Positions 411 through 14,678 of a stretch of DNA of 64,000 nt are shown here, one piece after another. Both the position numbers and the translations under genes were made by a program. The notes beneath the pieces are model-generated. The model made no database searches and was not told the origin of the DNA. It was given only the letters and a program-made list of their open reading frames with translations. Every line of letters starts with the position of its first letter. Position 1 is the first letter of the stretch. The DNA is taken from IMG/VR virus record IMGVR_UViG_3300043418_000072, positions 1 through 64,000 of that record. One strand, written 5' to 3'.

Positions 411-2117
411 TTACGCTGCTGCGGGAGGACCGCCCGGGGCCATTGCACCACCAGCTGCTGGTGCTCCAGGTGCTGGACCTACTCCGGGTGCGCCGGGTGG
501 CCCTTCTTCAGGGGCAGGGGCAACAGACTCTAAGTCTCCTGCAATACCGCCTGGTGTAACGCCAACGCTACGTAAGTCTGCGCCAGGTGCTGGTGCTGCT
601 TCTACGTCGCCTTGTTCTTCGTTCCACTGTTGTTCGTTTTCATTCATCTCTTGTTCGCTTAGACCTAAGTAACGAGTCATCAACCAACGCTTAGAGAAGT
701 ATGGGAACGCTTCTAAGCTAGTAAACGTTGCAATTCGTGCTTGGTCGGCTTCCGCTTGACTGTAGCTTGCAAAGTTTTGTGGCTCTTCGAATACCAAATC
801 AAACAATGAACCGTCGATGTTAATGCCTCTCCAACGCATAAACATCTTAAACTCTTGGTCAAGTTTGTCTACTACCATTGACTGTAAACGCTTGCAATAC
901 TGGTTGAAGCGCCATTCTTGGATCATTGCTGTGCCGACTTTACCGTCATTGGCACTTTGAGTTCCATCATCTAAGCCTGTTGGCAAATAGCTAGACGGAA
1001 TACGCAACCCACGGAATAGCTTGTTAGTAAAGAAACGCAAGTCTGTAATTTCGCCTAAGTTCTGACCGCCGGGTAGTGTATCAACACTAGATCCGCGACC
1101 GTCTGCTGTTACAGGGAAGAAGTAATCTTCGTTTGTGCTCAATGGATTGTACGTAGCATCCATCATGTTGGCACCGCCACCTGTTTGTGTAGGGATTCGG
1201 CGCTGTGAAACTTCGTTTTTAATACGGTCAACGAATGCCATAGCCATATGTGTTGGCATATTACCTACGTCAATCTTAAAGATTCTACGCTCCGGAGCAC
1301 GTTGCACACGGTAGATAATAATGCTGTCTTCGAGCAACTCTTTTTGCTTAAACACCTTGAAAACGTTTTCTAATACGCTGTTACCAAACGGCCAATATAC
1401 GTCTAAGCCTTCTGTTAAACTGATGTGTACCACATGTTCTGCGTTGATAACTGCTTCGTTTTGTTGGTGCGCAAAGCGTCCACCACCGCTTGATGGGCTG
1501 TTAGGTTGCACATAGCTACCGCTCGGACCGCCTACTTGTGGGTGGTTAGTGAATGTGTCACTGGTGCTAACTGCTGTAACTGTTAAGTTCTGGAAATTAG
1601 GGTTTAAGTCTTTAACAATATACTGTTCAGGCTTTTTGCCTTCTGCTTCGTTAACAATAACTTTAGTAACCTTGCTCATTTCAGTCCAGAATAACTTAAA
1701 TGTTTCTGGATCGCGGATAAACACTTGATCGCCGTACTTGATAACATTACGGAAAATCTTAAAGATGCGTTTGTTGAATTCGTTTAGAGCGACCCATTGC
1801 TGTAGCTGCTCTTTAATGATGTTTACTTCGTTGTCAGTTGGCTTGTCTTTGAAATGGATACTAAACGCTGTGTTGTTTTCCATGTTCTTTTGTGTAGAGA
1901 ACTCAGCTAAAATGTCTAGTGCAGCGTTAACTTCACTGTCCATGTCCATTTGTTCATACTGATTGTAACGCTCAACACGGTTAGGGTGACCGATATATAC
2001 TTCTGGTAGTGTGCTTTGATAGTTACGATAGCCAGGATCAGCTAAACGACCATTGGCCATTGGGCTTACGTTTGACGGTAAGTTTGCGCTCTTGAAATAC
2101 TTTTTCCACCCGGCCAT
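411..2117 (-). CDS. gp20: Portal vertex protein (T4 gp20-like)
   Basis: Motifs YRVQRAPERRIFKIDVGNMP, EDYFFP, GRGSSVDTLPGGQNLGEITDLRFF and GLRIPSSYL are typical of T4-type portals. SD AAGGA. Pro/Gly/Ala-rich C-terminal tail. Confidence 0.93.
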   Translation of the reverse strand: MAGWKKYFKSANLPSNVSPMANGRLADPGYRNYQSTLPEVYIGHPNRVERYNQYEQMDMDSEVNAALDILAEFSTQKNMENNTAFSIHFKDKPTDNEVNIIKEQLQQWVALNEFNKRIFKIFRNVIKYGDQVFIRDPETFKLFWTEMSKVTKVIVNEAEGKKPEQYIVKDLNPNFQNLTVTAVSTSDTFTNHPQVGGPSGSYVQPNSPSSGGGRFAHQQNEAVINAEHVVHISLTEGLDVYWPFGNSVLENVFKVFKQKELLEDSIIIYRVQRAPERRIFKIDVGNMPTHMAMAFVDRIKNEVSQRRIPTQTGGGANMMDATYNPLSTNEDYFFPVTADGRGSSVDTLPGGQNLGEITDLRFFTNKLFRGLRIPSSYLPTGLDDGTQSANDGKVGTAMIQEWRFNQYCKRLQSMVVDKLDQEFKMFMRWRGINIDGSLFDLVFEEPQNFASYSQAEADQARIATFTSLEAFPYFSKRWLMTRYLGLSEQEMNENEQQWNEEQGDVEAAPAPGADLRSVGVTPGGIAGDLESVAPAPEEGPPGAPGVGPAPGAPAAGGAMAPGGPPAAA

Positions 2118-2118
2118 A

Positions 2119-2664
2119 TTAAATTTCCTTTGCCTTATTGTTTAAATAAGCAGCTCTTCTTGTATCAGACCAGGAAGTTCCGGTTATCCCTTTATTCCAA
2201 GGAATCGTTCCTTTTTTAGTTTCTGAAATTTTTTGTTTAGTTTCCATTGATTTCGTTAATCCAATGTTAGCTTTTCTAATTTTGTTTGCATGTTGGATTG
2301 ACTTAGGCTTACTATAATTTTTTATTGCTTCCGCAGATCTAACTTTTCCTAAATTAGATTCTGATATTTTTATCTTAGTCTCAGCACTATGATGCCATCC
2401 CGATGTACATGCCCACTGATTTAATTTTATATTGTCAAGAACGCCGCCATCTAATTTTCTACCATATTTTCTTATCAACTGCATTTCAATTTGAAGAGCA
2501 TCGGCCTCTGTTAAATCTGTACAAATCAATTCTCTACAGTGTAAGGCAGGGACCGTTACATGTTTATGGGGTGCGTGGATACGGTTCCCTTTACCTTTTC
2601 CGATATAATATGGAGTTCCGTCTTCAGTTAAGTACCGATATACGTAGAAAATAGCTTGTGTCAT
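2119..2664 (-). CDS. Free-standing GIY-YIG homing endonuclease with NUMOD3-like repeats
   Basis: YVYRY...PYYIGKG GIY-YIG motif and catalytic Arg/Glu region. Two HSAETKIKIS/KSMETKQKIS NUMOD3-like repeats. Visibly AT-richer than flanking genes. Confidence 0.85.
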   Translation of the reverse strand: MTQAIFYVYRYLTEDGTPYYIGKGKGNRIHAPHKHVTVPALHCRELICTDLTEADALQIEMQLIRKYGRKLDGGVLDNIKLNQWACTSGWHHSAETKIKISESNLGKVRSAEAIKNYSKPKSIQHANKIRKANIGLTKSMETKQKISETKKGTIPWNKGITGTSWSDTRRAAYLNNKAKEI

Positions 2665-2681: not shown

Positions 2682-5168
2682 TTAACTCATGTTACGCATA
2701 AGACGTTCCGTAATGTCCCTATTATCGCCCATAATTCTAATTAAGTCTTCTGTTCTAGACAGTTGCTCTTTAAACAGTGAGGCTAACTCACTAGACGAAT
2801 CCGATGTAGCTGACCTGTTTGCCCCAAACATCTTTAAGAGTTCGCTCATTCCAGCAGACCCTTCTTTGAGGCCACCGTCTTCTTTCATTGGTAGCACTAG
2901 TTCCTTGCCGTGCAGCATAGACGCATATCCAGTCATTGGGCCACTAGCAATACCACCGTTAGCATACGATCCAGTTGGGGTAGCAGCTTTGTCTGGTTTT
3001 GATCCAGTTAGTCCGCCCCAGTTTTGATATAGTCCATAGCCTGCGCCAAGAACGCCGCCAGCTAATGCACCCATTGGGCCAAACATGGCACCCATACTAG
3101 CACCAGATAGTGCTGCACTACCAACACCAAGTCCGGCGCCAAGTTTTTCGTGCCCTGATTCTTTAGCCATGTCGGCACCCTTATCAAGGGCTAGGCCGCC
3201 CACCATACCAGCAATAGATCCCTTGTTGCTTTTTAGGAAATCTCCTGCACCACTCTTAGCACTCTTAGCCATTTCTTTTGCGCCACCACTAATGCCACCA
3301 CTTGCTCCGCCTTTTGCAGCAAATAATGACAGCACTGGTACTATCGCAGTTAATGCTGACACAATACCTGCCATTGCTGTTAACAAAGGCGACTGTGTGC
3401 CTGCGTTAATTCCCAGTTTAGCAAGCTCTTTAACAGAACCTTCAATGTCTTTAATAGTTGTATCAATTGCTTTTGCAAACTGTGGCAAGTTCTGTGCTGC
3501 AATCTTTTCCATTTCGACTGCAAAACGCTGCTGAGTTTCTTGTAGTCCAACTTCTTCTCGCTTGCCGCCCTTGCCTTCGTTCATTTGTTCAAGGATCTTC
3601 TTACGCTCTTCTTCAGTTGCCGCAGTTTGCAACTTACGTGTCAGCTGATCAGTTTTCATTTGATCACGGGCTGCGGCTGCTGCATCAGCATTACCTGCGT
3701 TACCAGCTTGTGCCAATGCTTTGTTAGCCATTGCACCTTTGTGGATTTCGTCTGAGTTCTCACCTTGCACCTTAAGGGTGTTATCTAAGTTTAGTCTACC
3801 TTCTGCTGCCAGGTTAGCAAACTCTTGGTTAGACTTGGCCAGTCCGCTGTTAGTTGCTTCTGCAATAGCAACATCTTTGCTAATAACAGTGCCGTAGATC
3901 ATACGCTCACGCAGGGCTTTGCGCTGAACTTCGCTCATACCCTTCATACTCTCAGTGATGTTGATACGTTCTTGCTCTGTCATTCCATCTAATTGCTGCT
4001 GGAATGCCAAGTTATCATTTTCTTGTCTAATCTGCTCTTGCTTGGCTTTCATATCTTCGCCAGTTAAGTCAGACAATAGCTTTAAATTCTTTGCGTATGT
4101 TTCTGTACGTGCAGCAATTTCTTCATTGCTTGCATTTAGCTTCCCGCTCGGTCCGGCCATCTGAGCCATAACTTGAGCATAAGCTCCTGCTTGCTCTTCC
4201 ATGCCCATGCCTAGAGCCATCATGCCTTTGCGGGCACTTGCTCCACCAGCTTCCATTGCTTTAGCTAGTTTCTTACTGCCTTCACCTACGCCCATTCCCA
4301 ACTGGGACAGTGCATCTTTGTTCTCTCCAACTGCCTTAGAAAACTGTTCTAGTGTTAGTCCTGCAGAGTTAGCAGTTCTAATCATTTCTTTCATGCCGCC
4401 GGCAAACATCGCACCACTGGCACTCATTGTTTGGAAGCCGCCGATTAGCTTTTGAGTCTGTGACAGCATAAAGCCAATACCAGCTTTAGCTAATTCACTT
4501 ACAGTATTACTTAGGAATCCTAGTGCGGCGCCAGCAACTGACGCAGCTATACCAAACTTACCCATTTTGCCACCAGCACCTGCTGTGGCTGCACCAAAAT
4601 CCCCAAGAGCCTTTGCACCAACTTGTGTTGCTGAGTTAGCAGTGTCAATATTGGCTTTCATAAACTCAGATGCCACAGACAGTGCATCACCACCACTTAG
4701 AGCTGCTGTTGCAGATCTAGTAAACGAGCTTGCAACCCCTTTAAGCACAGTGCCTGCCAGTGTACCCATTGAGTTCTTGAAGATTTCGCTGGATTTGTTT
4801 CTAGCATTGGCTTCTTCGAGTATTGCTTTCTCAGCAATTAGTGCAGCTTTCTTCTCTTTGTCCGCGGTATTGTTTACTTCTTTGCGTAAGCTAGCCAGTG
4901 ATTCTTCAAGATCATCAGCTGACATTCCTCCGCTTTTAAACTTTTCCTTAAGGCCCTTTAAGCTAGCGTCAATTTGATCATACGATCGCTTGAACATCTT
5001 ATTGGCTGATTCCATGTTCTTAGCAAAATCCAGCGCAGTCTTCTTAGCGTCGGCTTCACTTTTGCCCTTACCAAGCTCTGTTGCGATATTTTTCTCAATG
5101 GTGTGCCGATATACTTCGCTTATCTTCTTAAACTTTTCTAACTCTTCGTCCAGATTTACATCAGCCAT
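2682..5168 (-). CDS. Tail tape measure protein
   Basis: 828 aa Ala/Gly/Lys-rich, predicted helical, with Gly-rich hydrophobic stretches and a C-terminal YANGGIASGP...HGKELVLP motif. Adjacent to hub chaperone genes. Confidence 0.75.
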   Translation of the reverse strand: MADVNLDEELEKFKKISEVYRHTIEKNIATELGKGKSEADAKKTALDFAKNMESANKMFKRSYDQIDASLKGLKEKFKSGGMSADDLEESLASLRKEVNNTADKEKKAALIAEKAILEEANARNKSSEIFKNSMGTLAGTVLKGVASSFTRSATAALSGGDALSVASEFMKANIDTANSATQVGAKALGDFGAATAGAGGKMGKFGIAASVAGAALGFLSNTVSELAKAGIGFMLSQTQKLIGGFQTMSASGAMFAGGMKEMIRTANSAGLTLEQFSKAVGENKDALSQLGMGVGEGSKKLAKAMEAGGASARKGMMALGMGMEEQAGAYAQVMAQMAGPSGKLNASNEEIAARTETYAKNLKLLSDLTGEDMKAKQEQIRQENDNLAFQQQLDGMTEQERINITESMKGMSEVQRKALRERMIYGTVISKDVAIAEATNSGLAKSNQEFANLAAEGRLNLDNTLKVQGENSDEIHKGAMANKALAQAGNAGNADAAAAARDQMKTDQLTRKLQTAATEEERKKILEQMNEGKGGKREEVGLQETQQRFAVEMEKIAAQNLPQFAKAIDTTIKDIEGSVKELAKLGINAGTQSPLLTAMAGIVSALTAIVPVLSLFAAKGGASGGISGGAKEMAKSAKSGAGDFLKSNKGSIAGMVGGLALDKGADMAKESGHEKLGAGLGVGSAALSGASMGAMFGPMGALAGGVLGAGYGLYQNWGGLTGSKPDKAATPTGSYANGGIASGPMTGYASMLHGKELVLPMKEDGGLKEGSAGMSELLKMFGANRSATSDSSSELASLFKEQLSRTEDLIRIMGDNRDITERLMRNMS

Positions 5169-5178
5169 GGTTTTTACC

Positions 5179-5186
5179 TATAAATA
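5179..5186 (+). promoter_or_regulatory. T4-type late promoter TATAAATA for the gp26-like gene
   Basis: Exact T4 late consensus 34 nt before the ATG at 5221. A gp55-like sigma is encoded in the window. Confidence 0.75.
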
Positions 5187-5220: not shown

Positions 5221-6069
5221 ATGCCAAATTCAAGCATCAACCCACTATCTCGTCACTTTCGCCAACCTGCAATGTACATTAAGTTAACCAGCGGTGGCAA
5301 GTACTGGGCAGACGGTGCGCTAGAGCTTCCGGGTACAGGAGAACTTCCAGTGTTACCAATGACAACTAAAGATGAAATCATCTTACGCACTCCAGACGCA
5401 CTAGTTAACGGAACTAGCGTAGTGCAAGTGATTGAAAGCTGCTGCCCGAACATTAAAGATGCATGGGCTATGCCAAGCATTGACGTTGATTCTACGCTAA
5501 TTGCAATTCGCATCGCTAGCTACGGGCAACACATGCCTATTAGCAGCAAGTGCCCTGCATGTGAAGAAGAAAACGACTATGATATCGATCTAGCAGAGTC
5601 GTTGTCTAAGGTAAAAATTCCAGACTACGTTACCCCAATTGCAGCAGACGAAACGCTGACTATTCAGTTAAAGCCCATGCCTTACTCGCAAGTAAGCAAA
5701 TCAGGCGGTGTTAAACTAGAAGAAGAGAAATTAATCCAGGCCCTTGCTAATCCAGACCTAGATGAAGAATTGCGTATTGCAGAGTACGATAAGCATGTTA
5801 AGAAAATGATTAGTCTTAACTTAGACAACATTGTGGCATGTACTAAAAGCATCACTGCTGACGGGATTGTGGTTACAAACCCTGCACACATTAGAGAATA
5901 CTACGCAAACGCAGAAGCTGGTGTAATGCGTAAAATCAACACACGTATGGAAAGCATCGCAGCTGAAGCTGGTATCAAGCCACATGACGCTACCTGCAAT
6001 GAGTGTGGCCATCAATTCAAACTAGCTGTGGAGTTTGATTACTCTAATTTTTTCGCCAAAGGCTTTTGA
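5221..6069 (+). CDS. gp26: Baseplate hub subunit/assembly chaperone (T4 gp26-like); true start 5221, not 4990
   Basis: NPLSRHFRQP...LPVLPMTTKDEIILRTPDALVNG...IDVDSTLIAIRIASYG plus two CxxC pairs (CPAC, CNEC). SD AGGA before 5221. The ORF-track extension to 4990 is antisense to tape measure. Confidence 0.8.
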   Translation: MPNSSINPLSRHFRQPAMYIKLTSGGKYWADGALELPGTGELPVLPMTTKDEIILRTPDALVNGTSVVQVIESCCPNIKDAWAMPSIDVDSTLIAIRIASYGQHMPISSKCPACEEENDYDIDLAESLSKVKIPDYVTPIAADETLTIQLKPMPYSQVSKSGGVKLEEEKLIQALANPDLDEELRIAEYDKHVKKMISLNLDNIVACTKSITADGIVVTNPAHIREYYANAEAGVMRKINTRMESIAAEAGIKPHDATCNECGHQFKLAVEFDYSNFFAKGF

Positions 6070-6284
6070 TTCTCAACGCAGAAGACAGCATGGCCCTCAT
6101 TGAGGGTTATGAAAAAGAAACAAAAGCCATGAAAGAGGAAGTGCTGCGTATATGTTGGTATATGCGCGGCGGTATAAGTTACAACGATGCCATGCTGTTA
6201 AGCCAGCAGGAAAGAGAACTTATAGATAAAATCGTTAACGATAACATGGAAACAACAAAGAAATCAGGACTTCCGTTCTTCTAA
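6066..6284 (+). CDS. Small hub assembly protein (gp51-like), possibly expressed as a -1 frameshift extension of gp26
   Basis: WYMRGGISYNDAMLLSQQERELI resembles gp51-like chaperone tails. Only a TTG (6066) or a weak ATG (6090) start. Its frame opens exactly at a T TTT TTC heptamer (6048-6054). Confidence 0.6.
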   Translation: MILNAEDSMALIEGYEKETKAMKEEVLRICWYMRGGISYNDAMLLSQQERELIDKIVNDNMETTKKSGLPFF

Positions 6285-6304: not shown

Positions 6305-6810
6305 AAAGTCTAAGGGTTTAAAGATGTCTACGACATCTGTTGTTTCGCTTATCAGCTCACAACATAGGTTAAAGTTTTAATTTGTTAGCTTACATACAGA
6401 GCGAAGCGATTTAATACTTCATCTAGATTAATTGGTCACACTTTGCCCGAGCAGGGCAAAAAATGATTGAACTTCATCTGAGTAGCACAGTCACTTAGCG
6501 TTACAACAATTACAGAGGCGGTCGTCCGGTACCTCGAGTTGCGTCTTTATACGACGGCAGTTTATATACATACGCTAACACATATATAAACGTTAGGGTT
6601 TTTCTCCCTTCTTTTAGCCTTGATTAAATTCTTTTCAAACAGCAAAACCGGTTTTATGAAGGCATATCCGATCGTCGTCCTGTTAAGGATAGTTGCTGAG
6701 TGCTCCATACAGCGTGGAGTCTTCCGTCCCTGTGACCCGAGGTCCAGTTTTCCTAGGCGCCCGACTTTTAGCTGGCGCTTGCCTTATACTGTGTATCCTG
6801 CTTAGACTTT
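6305..6810 (-). ncRNA. Candidate large structured RNA (~506 nt), family not recognised
   Basis: Fills a 530-bp gene-free gap. Bounded by a perfect 10-bp inverted repeat (AAAGTCTAAG 6305-6314 / CTTAGACTTT 6801-6810). At least eight internal stems. One 14-bp helix (6560-6591) has four G-U pairs on the minus strand that would be A-C mismatches on the plus strand. Confidence 0.55.
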
Positions 6811-6815
6811 GTGTC

Positions 6816-7244
6816 TTAAATTTTGTTTATGATGTGGGAGCCATGGACACGAACAGAAATCTGTCCGTTATAATAATCTGTTGTTTCTAATACTTTACGT
6901 TCGAATTGCTCTCTAGCTTCAATGTAACTACATTCAGCCTTTGATTTGCAAATGTGAAGTATCTCTCTGGAAAAGTTTTCGGTGCCTAATTTTGTAATGT
7001 CTGAGGTTAACTCTGTGCTTGAACCATAATATTCTCTCCAATCGCTATCGATCTTTGAGCGGATTTTCTTTTTCTTTTTCGTGCCATTCTTTAATTTCAC
7101 TGTTTTTACAGTTGTCTTAGAGAACTTGGCTAGTTTTTTGCCTATGTACTTTCGGCCAGATAGATTATTTGTAATTAAGTAAACAAACCCAACACAGTCT
7201 TCGGGTAATTCTTCGACGGGTGCGCCTTGATATATCCAGGTCAT
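6816..7244 (-). CDS. Small GIY-YIG nuclease (endonuclease II/DenA-like)
   Basis: GFVYLITN...KYIGKK, YYGSS, FSREIL..C, EAREQF and YYNGQI match the single-domain GIY-YIG fold. Very basic insert KTVKLKNGTKKKKKIRSK. Confidence 0.8.
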   Translation of the reverse strand: MTWIYQGAPVEELPEDCVGFVYLITNNLSGRKYIGKKLAKFSKTTVKTVKLKNGTKKKKKIRSKIDSDWREYYGSSTELTSDITKLGTENFSREILHICKSKAECSYIEAREQFERKVLETTDYYNGQISVRVHGSHIINKI

Positions 7245-7277: not shown

Positions 7278-8510
7278 TTATGCCTTGATGCTAGTAGTAA
7301 AATAATTTGTTATTTGGGGCTGTTTAAGCCATTGCCATAATGTTAGCTTCTCGTACAATTCCTGCGTTAAAACAGGATCGCCTGGTAGCTCTAGTGCCTT
7401 GATGATTGCCTTAATTTCGTTGTCTATGTGTTGCTTGAACCATGTAGGGTCGCGTGGGTTGCTATCTGCTGGTGCAGGTTCGCTATGCTCCCATTTGCTA
7501 TATTGTTCAAGCAACCGTTTTTTAATATCTTGTGGTAAGTGTTGTATCTGTTGATATGCTGGACGAACTAACATGTTAGTCATTACATCAACTTCTCTTG
7601 ATACACACCAGCGGTATAAATCGTCTAATGTGTGTACACTCAGTGCGCTAGGTACTGCACGTACTGTAACATAGACGTGTCCTTGTTTGCGATGCTTTAG
7701 GTATAAATCAATATTGTCTAATACTGTTTGCGTACTCGAACCCTGTCGAATCAAATCGTTAAGTTCCCCGGTGCATTCAATACTAACACCAACGTCTACG
7801 TGTCTGAATGCGTTTAGTTTCTGCATCAGTGATTGATTAAACACCGTTCCGTTGGTAGTAAATCCTAGATATATGTTGTTCTTGCCCGCAAGTAGCAGGC
7901 GGTCAATTAGCTGTTCAAAGCGAGGGTTAAGTAAGGGTTCTCCACCTATTAAGTGTACAAACTCCAAGTCTTTTGACCCGCAGATGTAGTCAGTTACATG
8001 ATCCCATGCTTGTTGATCTTCAGTCCAGTTCATACGGGCAGCACCTCTAAAGGTCCCTGCTTTAATTTCTTGGACTGCAATCTTACTGCTAGCCATTGGC
8101 GTACACATTCTGCAAGCAAGATTACATTCGTTACCTAAGCTGATATGAAAGCTGTTAATACGTGGTGCAATATTTTCGTACTTGCGTTGATCAAATGTTT
8201 TGTAGAAGTTAACGGGATCAATTCCGTCTTTGTGATTTTCTTTAACTCGTTTGCTACTAGACCCCATTGCATCTTCATGATAACACATAGCGCACAGGGG
8301 CTCATTGATGCCCGACAATTTGTTAACACGGGCAGCATGTTGGTGTTCACTAGCAACCCACTCGGGTATAGTCATGATATGTACATTGTACTGTGCAGCC
8401 GCAGGCGTCCCATATACACGGTTGGGCTGTGCTCCACAGGTATGATAAGTGCCATCTGCATTGATATGCACTTCCTTCCATGGCACATTACAAAATACTT
8501 TATCGATCAT
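7278..8510 (-). CDS. Radical SAM protein with N-terminal twitch/SPASM-like Cys module
   Basis: CNLACRMC motif, GGEP and TTNGT core motifs. N-terminal FCNVPW...TC...CAMC. Confidence 0.88.
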   Translation of the reverse strand: MIDKVFCNVPWKEVHINADGTYHTCGAQPNRVYGTPAAAQYNVHIMTIPEWVASEHQHAARVNKLSGINEPLCAMCYHEDAMGSSSKRVKENHKDGIDPVNFYKTFDQRKYENIAPRINSFHISLGNECNLACRMCTPMASSKIAVQEIKAGTFRGAARMNWTEDQQAWDHVTDYICGSKDLEFVHLIGGEPLLNPRFEQLIDRLLLAGKNNIYLGFTTNGTVFNQSLMQKLNAFRHVDVGVSIECTGELNDLIRQGSSTQTVLDNIDLYLKHRKQGHVYVTVRAVPSALSVHTLDDLYRWCVSREVDVMTNMLVRPAYQQIQHLPQDIKKRLLEQYSKWEHSEPAPADSNPRDPTWFKQHIDNEIKAIIKALELPGDPVLTQELYEKLTLWQWLKQPQITNYFTTSIKA

Positions 8511-9450
8511 TTCTACACTTTATATTACAAACTTCTAACGGGAACAGTTCTAATCTAGTTAAAAACTCTTCCCATAATGGATCCGCAAGGATGTCAGACA
8601 AGGGTCGTGTCTTGATACTTAAACGATCGCGATACTTTTCGACAAAATCGTTTTGCTGATATCCGCTGTTGAACCAAGGACAGGGAAACACTAGTCCGTT
8701 AACGTTAATGAACATTTCCTTTTTCCAGTTCAAGCACTTGGCCCAACTATGCACATCCTTTTGATACTGGATATCAATTACCATGCCACGGGCACTGAGT
8801 GCGCCTTTTTTCTTTTGATAGTTAGGCACATTAATAACAATCTCAGGGCATAATGGATCGACCCCGTTAACTGCATAGCGACCGTCAAACTTGGTACTAT
8901 GCACCTCATTGAACTCGTCGACTCCCGCAGCCCGTGCAACTTCTTTGATCTCCCTGGTGTGGTGCTCGTTGAAGTTAAAAATAATGTAACTCCAAATGAT
9001 CCTACACGGCGACGCTGCACGTAGACTCTTGATACCAGCAATGATACTGTCAAAATTGCTATTGACTCGATATAGTTCATTGCTCGCTTGATCCCACCCG
9101 TCTACGCTAAATGTAACTGCATCATGCTCTGTTAGCATGTGCCCTAGTCGATCCCACCAGTCTACGCTCTTGTAGCTACCATTGGTTACAATCTTAACTT
9201 GTATGCGATTGAGTTTTAGATACTCAACGATTTCTAGGAACTCTGTTGCATAGATTGGATCGCCTACATCGCCGCAGAACAAGAATGTCTTCATGTTAGT
9301 TAGCATAGACGGAGGAAACGCCAACATGAATTCATGTAGCGTTATTTCTCTATTCAGTTGTTCGGGCTTTAATTCAGTACGAGGGCAGCGTGGACATTTT
9401 AGTGTACACTTGCTGCTGATCTCGATATGAATGTCTTGTAGGTTAAACAA
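8500..9450 (-). CDS. Radical SAM protein with C-terminal SPASM/twitch domain
   Basis: CTLKCPRC, GDVGDP, VTNGS, FSVDG. C-terminal C...GLVFPC...CNIKC. TTG start overlaps the gp46 stop. Confidence 0.88.
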   Translation of the reverse strand: MFNLQDIHIEISSKCTLKCPRCPRTELKPEQLNREITLHEFMLAFPPSMLTNMKTFLFCGDVGDPIYATEFLEIVEYLKLNRIQVKIVTNGSYKSVDWWDRLGHMLTEHDAVTFSVDGWDQASNELYRVNSNFDSIIAGIKSLRAASPCRIIWSYIIFNFNEHHTREIKEVARAAGVDEFNEVHSTKFDGRYAVNGVDPLCPEIVINVPNYQKKKGALSARGMVIDIQYQKDVHSWAKCLNWKKEMFINVNGLVFPCPWFNSGYQQNDFVEKYRDRLSIKTRPLSDILADPLWEEFLTRLELFPLEVCNIKCRNDR

Positions 9451-11215
9451 TGTCTATGTCTGTATTATAACTGGTGTAGCCGTTTTCCTTAACAACGTGT
9501 AATGTGTTGTTAACTCGGCCCGCTAACTCATCTTTGTGCGACACAAGCCAAATGCTCTTGTTGCTTTCACGACTCATCTTCTTAAGGATGCTTAGTGCAT
9601 TTTCAACACCACTGGTGTCCATGCCGCTGTCTACTAGCTCGTCAATGAACAACAGGTTAATGGGTTGATATAAACTTTCCCAAACATCACGGAACGCCCA
9701 GCTCAATGACAAAATCAATCTGTTACGTTCGCCACGTGACAAGTTGTCAAAGTCTAGATCGCGCCCTAGTTCGGTAATGCTAACTGATAAGTCGTTGTTG
9801 AATTTTACAGTATGCGGCAAGCCAATGCGATCTAAGTATTGTCCTAAACGTGCATTTAAGTAGCTCAAGTTTTGATCGATAATGCGCTTACGGATAAAGC
9901 TGTCTTTATTAGTTAACAATTTAAGCAAGAACTCTTGGTGCTCTTTCAAACTCACAAGTTCGTTCATTACATCGTATGAGATTTCTTCTAACGCTTGCTC
10001 ACTCATTTCTTTAATTTGCTCTGCATAAGGATCGGCTTCCTTTTCCTTTGCAGACAATTGGGCAAGTACGCTAGCCATACTGCTACGGTGTTCAAACGCA
10101 TCGCTTTCGCGATCGTAATAGACTTTTGGTTGCGCACCAGCTTCGCCAAATTCGGCTAAGGCATTCTTTAGTTCTACAATTTGAAAACCTAGAGCTTCAA
10201 AGTCAACGGTAACAGTTTCTAATTCTTTTAGTTTGGCTGCTAATTGTGTTTCGTGATTTTCATCATGCAGCTCGTGGCCACACGCATGACACTTGTGTTC
10301 ATGTAATGCAGCAACTTCTTGCTCAATGCGAGCGTAGAGCTTACGTTCACGGTCCTGATCTAACTCTGCACGTTTAAGGGCTTTGTTTAGCTCATTAATG
10401 TCTTTGACTTTCTGATTGTACTCGCTAAGTTCTTTGTGCGCTTGCAATTCAGCTTCGATGTCTAACGTGCTTAACTCATCAAAGGCACGTTGGAACTGTA
10501 GCACATCACGATCGTGGTGCTCTGTCCACATTTTCTGGCGTCTACGCAGACTACCAATCTGTTCTTCGATACGCTTGTTAGCATCGCCTACTGCTTTGAT
10601 GCGATATTCTTCTTGTGTGATTGCATCTTTAGTGGCTTTAGACAGTTCTTTCAATGACTCTGCCTTCTCGCTTAACAAGGTAATGCCCAACAACTGCTCA
10701 ATAATAGTGCGTTGATCATTGGCTTTGAGTGCAAGGAATGGTTCAGTGTAGGTGTTGAGTGCAAGGATATGCTTAAACATATCGTGGCTCATACCTAACA
10801 TACGCTCAATCTCTGCTTGAGTTTCGCGGCTGTCGCCTTGGGCCTCATCGGTAATTTCTTTTTCAGTACCTGACACAAAGAACTTCATAATGCCAGGCTT
10901 GCGCCCGCGCTCAATGCGATAGTCAATACCATCCTTTTCAAAATCAATGGTAACCAACATGCCTTTGCCATTGGTCTTATTGATCAAGTTATCTTTCTTG
11001 ATGTTAGTAAGTGCATTACCGTACAAGGCGAAGCTTAGTGCATTGATGATGGTTGTTTTACCTGTGCCATTACGTGCGCCAGTATCGTCGCCGCCTAAGT
11101 CTAAGTTTTCACCAAGTACTAGCGTCAAGTCATTGCGGTCAAAGTTGACGGCTTGCGTGGCATTTCCTACGCTCATGAAATTCTTCACGGTTAAATCTTT
11201 GATCTTGAAAGTCAT
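9443..11215 (-). CDS. gp46: Recombination endonuclease ATPase subunit (gp46, Rad50/SbcC-like)
   Basis: Walker A NGTGKT, coiled coil with CHAC zinc hook, signature LSRGE, Walker B LFIDE, H-loop VSH. Confidence 0.95.
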   Translation of the reverse strand: MTFKIKDLTVKNFMSVGNATQAVNFDRNDLTLVLGENLDLGGDDTGARNGTGKTTIINALSFALYGNALTNIKKDNLINKTNGKGMLVTIDFEKDGIDYRIERGRKPGIMKFFVSGTEKEITDEAQGDSRETQAEIERMLGMSHDMFKHILALNTYTEPFLALKANDQRTIIEQLLGITLLSEKAESLKELSKATKDAITQEEYRIKAVGDANKRIEEQIGSLRRRQKMWTEHHDRDVLQFQRAFDELSTLDIEAELQAHKELSEYNQKVKDINELNKALKRAELDQDRERKLYARIEQEVAALHEHKCHACGHELHDENHETQLAAKLKELETVTVDFEALGFQIVELKNALAEFGEAGAQPKVYYDRESDAFEHRSSMASVLAQLSAKEKEADPYAEQIKEMSEQALEEISYDVMNELVSLKEHQEFLLKLLTNKDSFIRKRIIDQNLSYLNARLGQYLDRIGLPHTVKFNNDLSVSITELGRDLDFDNLSRGERNRLILSLSWAFRDVWESLYQPINLLFIDELVDSGMDTSGVENALSILKKMSRESNKSIWLVSHKDELAGRVNNTLHVVKENGYTSYNTDIDIV

Positions 11216-11802
11216 TCTTTATATTGCCTCATTAAATTATCTTTCCATGGTAGCATTCTGAGATTGCTGATTTGTGCTGCTTCATGCGGACTCTGCCCTT
11301 TTTCGAAGCACTCTTTAATAGGGGTTATATGGTCTAATTGCCATCCACCTTCTACACCGCATAATGTCCTTGGGTAGTTATTAGGGTTAATTGCATCTTT
11401 ATGTTTTTCATACATCTTCTGACTAAGTCCGTGTACTTTTCTTGCATACCTAGTATATTCTTCGATATTTGGATTACGAATTGGCCTAAGCATCCCCTTA
11501 TACGATGGATTTTGTGTAAGCATCTGGCATCGTGGAGAACAAAATCTTTTTTTGGAGGCTTGGTTAACGGTAAACGAAGTTGAACAATCTTTACAAATGC
11601 AACTACGGGTAACTTGCCGTATTTTTTTAATATTTGGTTTTCCAGGTTTAGCTCCGATTGGGATAATGATTCCTTGTTGCTTTCTAAATCGATATACTGT
11701 TTGCGGGTGTATGTTTAGCAATTTTCCTATTTCGGCTGCGGCCAATAATGGGTTACTAATTAATTCTATTTCTTTTGTTGTGTAGATTCTTGCGTTAGCC
11801 AT
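11212..11802 (-). CDS. Putative HNH-type homing endonuclease
   Basis: N-terminal HTH-like region, CKDC/FCSPRC zinc finger, C-terminal WQLDHITP...NLRMLPWKDN. AT-rich, with its own late box and SD AAGGAG. Confidence 0.7.
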   Translation of the reverse strand: MANARIYTTKEIELISNPLLAAAEIGKLLNIHPQTVYRFRKQQGIIIPIGAKPGKPNIKKIRQVTRSCICKDCSTSFTVNQASKKRFCSPRCQMLTQNPSYKGMLRPIRNPNIEEYTRYARKVHGLSQKMYEKHKDAINPNNYPRTLCGVEGGWQLDHITPIKECFEKGQSPHEAAQISNLRMLPWKDNLMRQYKE

Positions 11803-12875: not shown

Positions 12876-13816
12876 TCACAGATTTTTCGTAAATCGGTTA
12901 GATTAGTGGGTAGCATATTAAGATTGTACACTTTTAACCTAATTCCTTTTTTGCCAAGTTGATGTTGTATTACAGATTCGTCCAAAATACTTAAAGTATC
13001 CCAGTTAAAGTTAACAGTGGAATCGATATTTTGGATGATGTTATTAACTAATTGATCTTTGTTTATATGCGTTTGCGTAGACATCCAATGTGTATGTATT
13101 GTAGACATCTTATCTTGGTTCTGCAACGTATATGGTTGACCTAGCCATTGGATGCACTCACAAATTGTGTCTTCGAAATTTTGATAGAAATCTATTTGAC
13201 TAATTTTAAAAACATTTCCGGGGCAAGCATCTAACTTAGTTGGGTGCGCTGTTTTAGATAGTGACACTAAGTCTAGTCCGCTAAGTATTTCCCTGAGGAT
13301 CCATGCCGGGAGATGCTTAATTTGAGAGCTTGCAGCCTTTGAAGGCACCCGTGGGATGTTGATATTATAAATTTCCTTATACAATAAAGAATTTGCAACA
13401 ATCATTGAGCACACATGCCCCCAAAAAATCCCACCAAATGCAGCTCTAAAGAATGCGTTATTTAATTGCGTTAGTGTGTGCTCAGGGGACGACACTATTG
13501 AGATCATATGTAACGAATCTTCTCCAACGCAATCTACAAAATTTTTATAGTCGTTGGATTTCAATGGTGGGTGCATTAAGACAATATTCGAATTTCGAGC
13601 AGTGCCAGACCTGATACAAGATCTCCATTGGAAATAATCATCAATTGTTACACCGTTGTTGTTTTCTTTTCTAAAAATGTGATTGTGTGATGCATTATTT
13701 AAATCCAACGGAATAGGCATATTGCAGTATTCCTTGATTCCAAAGTAATTTAAGCACCACAGTAACCAATTTCCATGGTTACCAGAGTGATACAATAACG
13801 GAATAAGGTTACTCAT
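12872..13816 (-). CDS. Hypothetical protein inserted between sigma and gp47 (start 13816 preferred)
   Basis: AT-rich ORF coupled at both ends (GATGAGTAA and ATGA overlaps). The N-terminal YHSGNHGNWL loosely recalls sulfotransferase-like loops but is unassigned. Confidence 0.6.
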   Translation of the reverse strand: MSNLIPLLYHSGNHGNWLLWCLNYFGIKEYCNMPIPLDLNNASHNHIFRKENNNGVTIDDYFQWRSCIRSGTARNSNIVLMHPPLKSNDYKNFVDCVGEDSLHMISIVSSPEHTLTQLNNAFFRAAFGGIFWGHVCSMIVANSLLYKEIYNINIPRVPSKAASSQIKHLPAWILREILSGLDLVSLSKTAHPTKLDACPGNVFKISQIDFYQNFEDTICECIQWLGQPYTLQNQDKMSTIHTHWMSTQTHINKDQLVNNIIQNIDSTVNFNWDTLSILDESVIQHQLGKKGIRLKVYNLNMLPTNLTDLRKICE

Positions 13817-14678
13817 CGCCATCGTACCCTCCGCCGCCGCCACCGCCCATACCTTGACGAGTATAACTTGGGTTTAGGTTATTCATTTCTAAGATATCGT
13901 CTCTCAGATTCTGGTTACGCTTTTCGATGTTCAAGACACGAGTAAAACTGTTAGTGATAGCGGCAGTATAATACGCAAAAGGGTTCTGCGATTTGGATTC
14001 GTCAAACTGGAGTCCGATTTGGCTGAGTTGAAGTAGGGCTTGGCTTCGCATTTCGTCATTGTATGTGTATCCTCTCCAGTTAGAGCGTGTGGCGTAACGC
14101 TCGCATAATTTCATAAACATGTGCGCTAGCTTGCGGGTCATTGCGCCATGATCCTTGCTATATACGCCGTCTTCTAAGGTACCTTTCCAGTGGCTTCTAC
14201 CAACTACAACAGGCTCGCCTGCTTCGTTAAGTTTATAATGCAAGAATGGAGGAAAGTTACATTTGGTGTATTTGGTAGTTTTTGCTTCTTCGGGTTCGTC
14301 GTATTCGCTTAGGATTTCGTCATCCTCGTCTACCCATGCAGCAACTTTTTTGCCTTTTTTACTATCGTCAAGTGGTACATGCTCCCAACTCATTACCCTA
14401 AAAATAACGTCCGACTCGGCAATAGTGTCCAATTCGATTGCAAATTCATCTAGTTTACGCTTTGTGCCATCTGCGGTAGCTAGTTCATGTGCTGCTTTTG
14501 CTAAACGTTCTGCTCTATTAGTGCGACCTTCTAAGATATTGGCCTTGTTTAGTCTTTTCAAATCCGGTAAGATGATGTCGTAATCGCCATATTCTGGTTG
14601 AGTGTAGCAACAATAGGTGTTCTTACTTTTATGAATTTCCTTTAGGATGTCTTTGTTGTTGAGATAGTTGTGTTTCAT
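13809..14678 (-). CDS. gp55: Late-transcription sigma factor (T4 gp55-like)
   Basis: HNYLNNKDIL N-terminus and RSNWRGYTYNDEM...FDESKSQNPFAYYT...F region. TAAATA boxes precede the structural genes. Confidence 0.85.
   Translation of the reverse strand: MKHNYLNNKDILKEIHKSKNTYCCYTQPEYGDYDIILPDLKRLNKANILEGRTNRAERLAKAAHELATADGTKRKLDEFAIELDTIAESDVIFRVMSWEHVPLDDSKKGKKVAAWVDEDDEILSEYDEPEEAKTTKYTKCNFPPFLHYKLNEAGEPVVVGRSHWKGTLEDGVYSKDHGAMTRKLAHMFMKLCERYATRSNWRGYTYNDEMRSQALLQLSQIGLQFDESKSQNPFAYYTAAITNSFTRVLNIEKRNQNLRDDILEMNNLNPSYTRQGMGGGGGGGYDGDE

Follow-up and report, generated by a model that had tools for sequence, protein, structure and literature searches.

The gp26-like gene of an uncultured, freshwater T4-like phage with a 354-kb genome ends in a slippery heptamer, beyond which a second reading frame is open in the -1 register. 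This raises the question as to whether the gene yields one protein or, by a programmed -1 ribosomal frameshift, a short and a long protein, which phage T4 makes from two separate genes, 26 and 51. The initial annotation of the locus, made from the sequence alone, proposed such a frameshift and linked the T4-type gp26/gp51 pair to the G/GT scheme of phage lambda. In the following, we examine the locus itself, the conservation of the signal and of its -1 product, the RNA structure around it, and its relationship to the T4 proteins.

The gp26-like locus and its reading frames

The window, i.e. the whole stretch of DNA that was analysed, comprises the first 64 kb (64,000 nucleotides) of the 354,098-bp IMG/VR virus record IMGVR_UViG_3300043418_000072, derived from a freshwater metagenome. 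The record represents a T4-like jumbo phage, and it encodes a gp20 portal, SbcCD-like gp46/47 genes, a gp55-like late sigma factor and homing endonucleases. A nucleotide search of GenBank phages with the locus returned no match. The features of the locus are collected in Table 1.

Table 1. Coordinates of the features at and around the gp26-like gene, numbered from the first nucleotide of the window.
Positions	Strand	Feature	Supporting data
411-2117	-	gp20 portal gene	
2682-5168	-	Divergently transcribed 828-aa gene, putative tape measure or virion structural protein	phrog_28, E 1e-3; syntenic large 'virion structural protein' in RaK2 (its record note cites similarity to a tape measure protein), PA5oct, 121Q, XbC2, BF and L130 (one of the lineages with tandem paralogues, see text)
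5179-5186	+	TATAAATA, the T4-type late-promoter consensus, about 35 nt before the gp26-like start	Sequence; gp55-like factor encoded in the window; function inferred
5221-6069	+	gp26-like gene, 0-frame short product of 282 aa ('G'-like form) with Cys-x2-Cys pairs; start ATG 5221, preceded by AGGA; stop TGA 6067-6069	PF12322 T4_baseplate, E 1e-16, 61.5 bits against a curated cut-off of 24.5; phrog_150; 1918 homologues found; AlphaFold2 model pLDDT 84.6
5221-6284	+	Conceptual long product of 354 aa (residues 1-276 in frame 0, then the 78 -1 codons); 'GT'-like form, equivalent to T4 gp51	Profile alignment with T4 gp51; aligns end to end with natural in-frame long forms
6030-6033	+	GGAG, Shine-Dalgarno-like element 14 nt 5' of the heptamer; possible local stimulator	Comparable element in only 12 of 27 sequences
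6045-6047	+	TAA stop in the -1 frame directly before the heptamer; the -1 frame can only be entered at or after the slip site	Sequence
6048-6054	+	Slippery heptamer T TTT TTC, X XXY YYZ register, on the invariant Phe277-Phe278	All 27 compared sequences and 80 of 80 cyanophage contigs
6048-6284	+	-1 frame extension of 78 codons (FFRQRLL...WYMRGGISY...ER...GLPFF), predicted helical; stop TAA 6282-6284	Conserved alignment; model pLDDT 82; 491 representative hits
6061-6068	+	5' arm (GGCUUUUG) of a stem that starts 6 nt after the heptamer; contains the 0-frame stop	MFE -29.3 kcal/mol; duplex test p 0.007
6066	+	TTG, candidate start of an independent ORF	AAAGG only 3 nt upstream
6090	+	ATG, candidate start of an independent ORF	No clear Shine-Dalgarno sequence
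6121-6128	+	3' arm (CAAAAGCC) of that stem; encloses an inner hairpin at 6089-6098 / 6102-6111	Covarying arms
6322-6338	+	Terminator-like hairpin after the end of the -1 ORF	Consensus scan only
13809-14678	-	gp55-like late sigma factor gene	

The gene ends TAC TCT AAT TTT TTC GCC AAA GGC TTT TGA in frame 0 (YSNFFAKGF, then stop), while the -1 frame, closed by TAA immediately before the heptamer, then reads FFRQRLLILNAEDSMALIEG... for 78 codons. What the initial annotation had described at the sequence level, namely the heptamer, the open -1 frame, the upstream GGAG and the poor start codons of the downstream ORF, is therefore exact. The start of the gene is placed at ATG 5221 rather than at the TTG at 4990 that the ORF list gives. 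The neighbouring gene, which had been taken to be the tape measure gene, is only weakly tape-measure-like and lies on the opposite strand.

The heptamer does not appear to be a product of chance. Across the 354-kb genome, only three in-frame T TTT TTY sites occur among 143 Phe-Phe dipeptides, and the first Phe codon is TTC in 119 of these 143, although TTT makes up 65% of Phe codons. T runs are thus avoided in general and retained at this site.

Conservation of the heptamer and of the -1 product

Lack of conservation of the heptamer and variation of the frame offset among relatives had been named beforehand as the observations that could overturn the proposal, together with independent initiation at 6066 or 6090 only; on each of these points the comparison came out in favour of the frameshift. 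Relatives were collected from GenBank jumbo phages (Atu_ph07, Phosso, SCTP-2, PA5oct, RaK2, 121Q, XbC2, BF, Vibrio 2.275.O, RsoM2USA and RAS14), from more distant T4-like phages (cyanophage P-SSM2, Melnitz, OLIVR6, PhiW-14 and Aeromonas AsFcp_1) and from IMG/VR contigs. In all 27 sequences compared (26 lineages, 11-59% identical to the window in the -1 product), the invariant C-terminal Phe-Phe of the gp26 homologue is encoded as N NT TTT TTY, and a -1 ORF of 60-84 codons follows. All 80 of 80 close P-SSM2-like contigs carry TTTTTTC, such that the signal is kept in all 106 relatives' junctions that were read, and the offset is always -1. Given a conserved Phe-Phe, and taking each gene's own Phe codon usage and third-position T frequency, the joint probability that 26 lineages all carry the heptamer is about 1e-18.

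The frame that is conserved beyond the heptamer is the -1 frame. The 0-frame tails differ in length (0-11 codons) and in sequence (AKGF, AVGS, GDAS, ALAS, A, E, ENGS, VQGFSSQNQKK), whereas the -1 frame reads F-F-R-x-(R/K)-(L/I)-L from the first codon after the slip, followed by a conserved protein containing ...WYMRGG.SY.EA..LS..ER.... A strain approximately 96% identical is present in an RNA library, and all strain variants downstream of position 6069 fall on third positions of the -1 frame.

It might be argued that the small ORF is an independent gene, translated by coupling or reinitiation at TTG 6066 or ATG 6090, and that the heptamer is merely a by-product of a conserved Phe-Phe. Indeed, the TTG overlaps the stop codon (TTGA) and an ATG lies 14 codons in; Atu_ph07 and Phosso have an ATGA overlap, all 80 cyanophage contigs have an ATG at codon 5, and GenBank records annotate a separate small gene. 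In some relatives (Atu_ph07, Phosso, 121Q and the 80 cyanophage contigs) an ATG lies 3-5 codons after the slip, so that separate initiation could also occur there. However, conserved residues precede every possible start. The first ATG of the -1 ORF lies anywhere from codon 3 to codon 58, PA5oct has no ATG, GTG or TTG in its 75 codons, and small ORFs called in a library of 1.84 billion proteins start at 9 or more different profile positions. Furthermore, ATG 6090 reads ATA in the ~96%-identical strain. T4-type phages keep a Phe-containing motif without the slippery codons (TTC TTT in T4 gp26), so Phe-Phe alone does not force the heptamer, and in-frame long homologues (see below) show that the extension functions as part of the larger protein. 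Independent initiation cannot explain these facts, and we consider two independent genes very unlikely.

An artefact, either a homopolymer sequencing error that splits one real ORF or a -1 ORF open by chance, was also considered, since T6 runs are error-prone on some sequencing platforms and one IMG/VR contig (L011) has in-frame stops in this gene. This is refuted by the comparative data: the same frame arrangement occurs in finished genomes of many cultured phages and in independent metagenomes, 119 of 120 close homologues end in FF plus four residues, independent DNA and RNA contigs all keep T6, and the -1 ORF is conserved as protein. Homologues of 308-336 aa, which we suspected of being fusions, proved to be N-terminal over-extensions that end in FF plus four residues like the rest.

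Transcriptional slippage, in which RNA polymerase adds one U in the T run, would yield the identical fusion protein, and three relatives do have longer runs (T7 in RAS14, T8 in Melnitz and T9 in RsoM2USA). Nevertheless, 24 of 27 sequences have only T6, below the run length at which bacterial RNA polymerase slips appreciably, and the base after the run is C in 24 of 27. A stem at the 5-7 nt spacing typical of ribosomal frameshift stimulators recurs, and RNA-library contigs show T6, although these are consensus sequences from an assembler, which cannot reveal a minority of slipped transcripts. This route is therefore improbable on a T6 run, yet it is still possible for the T8 and T9 variants.

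RNA structure and the upstream element

The 80 nt after the heptamer fold more stably than shuffled sequences (mean z -2.2). In the window, GGCUUUUG pairs with CAAAAGCC around an inner hairpin. In about 17 of 27 sequences, an arm starting 5-7 nt after the heptamer pairs over 8-12 bp with a partner 24-122 nt downstream, and the arms differ in sequence but stay complementary: GGCUCUUUG/CAAAGAGCC in Atu_ph07, GCCUCUUG/CAAGAGGC in two further compared sequences, L018 and L020, and also GCCUCCUG/CAGGAGGC, UCCUAGUAUC/GAUAUUAGGA and GCCCUCUCCCA/UGGGAGAGGG. A per-sequence duplex test gave a Fisher combined p of 5e-14 over 26 lineages against shuffles and 2e-8 against positional controls. In contrast, the stem is not significant in about 10 of 27 sequences (the RaK2/121Q/XbC2/BF clade, L021, L023 and RAS14), and RNAalifold on 15 downstream regions returned zero consensus pairs because the 3' arm sits at different distances. 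These observations point both ways, and whether a stimulatory structure belongs to the site in general is left undecided by them, although the stem is a more general stimulator candidate than the upstream element.

The GGAG upstream of the heptamer, which the initial annotation had put forward as a stimulator, is not conserved. A comparable element (duplex of -5 kcal/mol or stronger) is present in only 12 of 27 sequences and overlaps conserved codons where present; the GGAG itself is shared only with close relatives. It was thus rejected as a general stimulator, but it may contribute in this phage.

Relationship to T4 gp26 and gp51

In T4, gene 26 (208 aa) is followed by gene 25, and gene 51 (249 aa) is transcribed divergently from it; the two are not adjacent in tandem. 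Both proteins match PF12322 over about 200 residues (residues 1-201 of gp51), and gp51 has an extra ~48 residues at its C-terminus. The small ORF, termed gp51-like in the initial annotation, corresponds only to the last ~50 residues of T4 gp51. T4 gp51 hits phrog_150, the gp26 family, at E 3e-84 over the whole profile, and the cyanophage-type -1 ORFs hit positions 231-278 of that same profile, beginning exactly at FF. An HMM built from conceptual -1 fusions of five phages aligns to gp51 of T4, 60AhydR15PP and Stupor as one domain with no gap at the junction, where dFFrll aligns with IFKLL, VFKLL and LFEVL.

A profile of the jumbo-type fusions, with the window's 354-aa product first, was aligned to T4 gp51 with hhalign, giving a probability of 98.8% and E 6e-17 over residues 40-342 against 12-247, continuous across the junction; within this, residues 266-342 of the window fusion align to residues 189-247 of gp51, such that the long form carries the gp51-type C-terminal extension, including the ...NYSLNSISKMIPAER... 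motif. The full-length profile was needed for this result: the extension profile against T4 gp51 alone gave a probability of only 2.7%, although it aligned to the same region, and Pfam and PHROG scans of the window's extension alone returned nothing.

The short product corresponds to T4 gp26, which ends ...EFFELL, encoded TTC TTT, with no -1 ORF. T4 and the other Straboviridae examined (Tulanevirus, Krischvirus, Twarogvirinae) encode the two forms as two divergent paralogous genes without a slippery site or -1 ORF, with gene 25 following gene 26, and other two-gene Straboviridae have lost FF altogether. Genome scans show two full copies in T4, one gene plus an overlapping out-of-frame piece in AsFcp_1 and P-SSM2, and a single gp26-type match in RaK2 and PhiW-14; the window has one gene.

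Natural in-frame long forms also exist. Among the best 150 hits to the extension profile, 20 are proteins of 319-351 aa with the extension at their very C-terminus, with junctions that read, for example, ...DWSSSFRNKIL..., with a single Phe. In 4 of 4 informative contigs, one of them a 327-kb contig with the window's synteny, a short PF12322 paralogue of 281-318 aa lies directly upstream in the same orientation. In two contigs the short paralogue keeps T TTT TTC, but the -1 frame closes after one or two codons; in the third it has lost FF. Lineages without the frameshift therefore encode the two forms separately, as one expects if both forms are required.

Interpretation and comparison with known systems

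The proposal of a frameshift that links gp26/gp51 to a G/GT-like scheme is supported, and indeed more deeply than was first suggested, since T4 gp51 is the in-frame equivalent of the whole fusion product. In our view, most ribosomes would read frame 0 to the TGA and make the 282-aa protein, while a fraction would slip back one base with tRNA-Phe in both the P site (UUU) and the A site (UUC) on U UUU UUC, and continue in the -1 frame to make a 354-aa protein with the same N-terminal 278 residues plus a 76-residue helical extension. The slip would probably be promoted by the downstream stem. What the analysis itself demonstrates is the signal, its conservation, the conservation of the -1 product and the homology to gp51; that slippage actually occurs, how efficiently it does so, and that the products act as chaperones are deductions, as no protein, ribosome-profiling or reporter evidence exists. 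On balance, we hold with high confidence that a -1 ribosomal frameshift makes a gp51-like long form.

The chaperone role rests on the T4 literature and on GenBank annotation, not on a test. The T4 review PMC3004832 lists gp26 and gp51 as hub assembly chaperones and describes gp51 as essential, of unknown function and absent from the particle, while one GenBank record (Acinetobacter phage Stupor) labels both 'tape measure protein assembly chaperone'. Binding of the products to the tape measure and tail tube proteins, their requirement for tail assembly and their absence from the virion were not examined; a search of the genome for a T4 gp19 tube protein (PF06841) gave no hit, no complex prediction was run, and we make no binding claim.

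The lambda gpG/gpGT frameshift belongs to a tail assembly chaperone frameshift reported to be conserved in P2 (E/E+E'), Mu, HK97 and others (Xu, Hendrix and Duda 2004). As in lambda, a -1 slip near the 3' end of an assembly-chaperone gene would yield a short product and a C-terminally extended product that share their N-terminus, here at the sequence level only; the gene lies beside the putative tape measure gene; and, by the T4 literature, the products are needed for tail assembly but absent from virions. The need for both forms is supported by the lineages with two paralogues. However, the gene is divergent from the putative tape measure gene, not directly upstream of it in the same direction, the protein is larger (282 aa) with a Cys4 element, and the heptamer is U UUU UUC rather than G GGA AAG. 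PF12322 is not a recognised tail assembly chaperone family, and no sequence or fold similarity to known chaperone families was found: Pfam and PHROG scans gave no chaperone-family hit, Foldseek of the gp26-like model against the PDB gave a best E of 0.077, a wide VIA-align search matched only a helical hairpin (Z 8.3), and BFVD returned only other gp26/gp51-family models. Neither the gp26-like model nor that of the extension, both confident, resembles a solved chaperone structure. The locus would work like G/GT, but it is not shown to be a member of that family.

Frameshift-made short/long chaperone pairs are a hallmark of long-tailed phages. Full-text searches of the literature, which did not extend to subscription-only papers, found no report of such a frameshift for T4-like phages, and none of the 20 GenBank records examined annotates a joined CDS. 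If the finding is right, many cyanophage and jumbo-phage genomes carry a mis-annotated small 'gp51' gene, or no annotation at all (RaK2 and PA5oct), where there should be one recoded gene. T4 gp51 and gp26 would gain a mechanistic reading as a fixed-ratio long/short pair. The replacement of a frameshift by gene duplication, apparently in more than one lineage (divergent genes in T4, tandem paralogues in the lineages here called L127, L128 and L130), would be a clear natural experiment on why both forms and their ratio matter. Finally, the site would offer a U UUU UUC signal with a stem whose partner moves along the mRNA, useful for studying frameshift stimulators.

A broader reading, which we regard as likely though less secure than the frameshift itself, is that one gp26-type gene with a -1 frameshift is the ancestral and still dominant way in which the whole T4 superfamily makes a short/long chaperone pair, the superfamily here including cyanophages, relatives of pelagiphages and methylophages, PhiW-14, OLIVR, Angelvirus and the RaK2- and Atu_ph07-like jumbo phages. 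In this view, T4 genes 26 and 51 and, separately, the tandem paralogue pairs in other lineages are hard-wired replacements of the frameshift that arose by duplication. This would also extend the tail-chaperone frameshift rule to the one major long-tailed group for which we found no such frameshift reported.

The E. coli dnaX tau/gamma frameshift likewise has a heptamer; it also has a downstream stem-loop, with which the candidate stem described above may be compared, and a Shine-Dalgarno-like element comparable to that about 14 nt upstream in this phage, which is not conserved among the relatives of the phage. In dnaX, the shifted product is the shorter one. The small 'gp51 / baseplate hub assembly catalyst' ORFs annotated in cyanophages and relatives (phrog_634) are the same -1 extension in P-SSM2, Melnitz, OLIVR6, PhiW-14 and AsFcp_1, annotated as free-standing genes of 46-59 aa (47 aa in Melnitz, 59 aa in PhiW-14). 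The Melnitz and OLIVR6 annotations cut off conserved residues that have no start codon. The jumbo-phage type of the extension is longer (72-84 codons) because of an inserted helix.

Genomic context and minor features of the locus

The 530-nt gap after the locus contains, just 3' of the segE-like gene, a full-length match to the Polynucleobacter-1 RNA (Rfam RF01718; 109.5 bits against a gathering score of 37, E 3e-24), which is either a possible host hint (freshwater Polynucleobacter) or a phage-borne small RNA. Homing-endonuclease-like genes are interspersed among the core genes around the locus, and a segE-like gene sits at the same place in the syntenic 327-kb contig L130. Furthermore, two adjacent radical-SAM-domain genes of unknown role, one of which has a weak, sub-threshold SPASM match, lie next to the structural and recombination genes.

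Coordinates of additional features in the window, the whole genome and the compared sequences
Feature	Sequence	Coordinates (strand)
Polynucleobacter-1 RNA match	Window	6637-6783 (-)
Three homing-endonuclease-like genes (NUMOD3, SegE GIY-YIG, HNH)	Window	2119-2664 (-), 6816-7244 (-), 11212-11802 (-)
Two radical-SAM-domain genes	Window	7278-8510 (-), 8500-9450 (-)
G>A strain variant, ATG 6090-6092 to ATA	Window (run X7)	6092
1-nt deletion in one contig	Window (run X4)	6084
ORFs with further in-frame T TTT TTC sites	Whole genome	183490-185934 (-), 200138-201250 (+)
Small ORFs after gp26	GenBank records L028, L029, L030, L032	1493-1666, 1523-1666, 1520-1660, 1490-1669
Tandem short and long PF12322 paralogues	Uncultured relatives L127, L128, L130	411-2389, 820-2744, 2172-4008

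Codon usage and sequence variants

Across the whole genome, Phe-Phe dipeptides avoid TTT as the first codon (119 of 143 use TTC), although TTT is the preferred Phe codon. Two further in-frame T TTT TTC sites exist, which were not examined for -1 ORFs. The G>A variant belongs to a ~96%-identical strain in a freshwater metatranscriptome, while the single-nucleotide deletion probably derives from a more distant relative or an assembly error. In L011, an IMG/VR contig that is 99% identical to the window, the gp26-like gene carries in-frame stops (...CPACE followed by two stops), probably reflecting a low-quality assembly.

Annotation and distribution of related forms

The small ORFs after gp26 in the GenBank records are the -1 extension of gp26. 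P-SSM2, Melnitz and OLIVR6 annotate them as gp51 or 'baseplate hub assembly catalyst', whereas the ORF of PhiW-14 is termed a hypothetical protein. The Melnitz and OLIVR6 annotations start after conserved residues, and RaK2 and PA5oct have no annotation for this ORF at all. In some uncultured relatives, the tandem paralogues replace the frameshift, with two of the short copies keeping a relic T TTT TTC that leads into an immediate -1 stop. Finally, the BFVD matches of the gp26-like model show that the fold recurs in larger (380-550 aa) uncharacterised proteins of phiRSL1-, RSF1- and Special G-type jumbo phages and in Ackermannviridae, and the family may be wider than PF12322 suggests.
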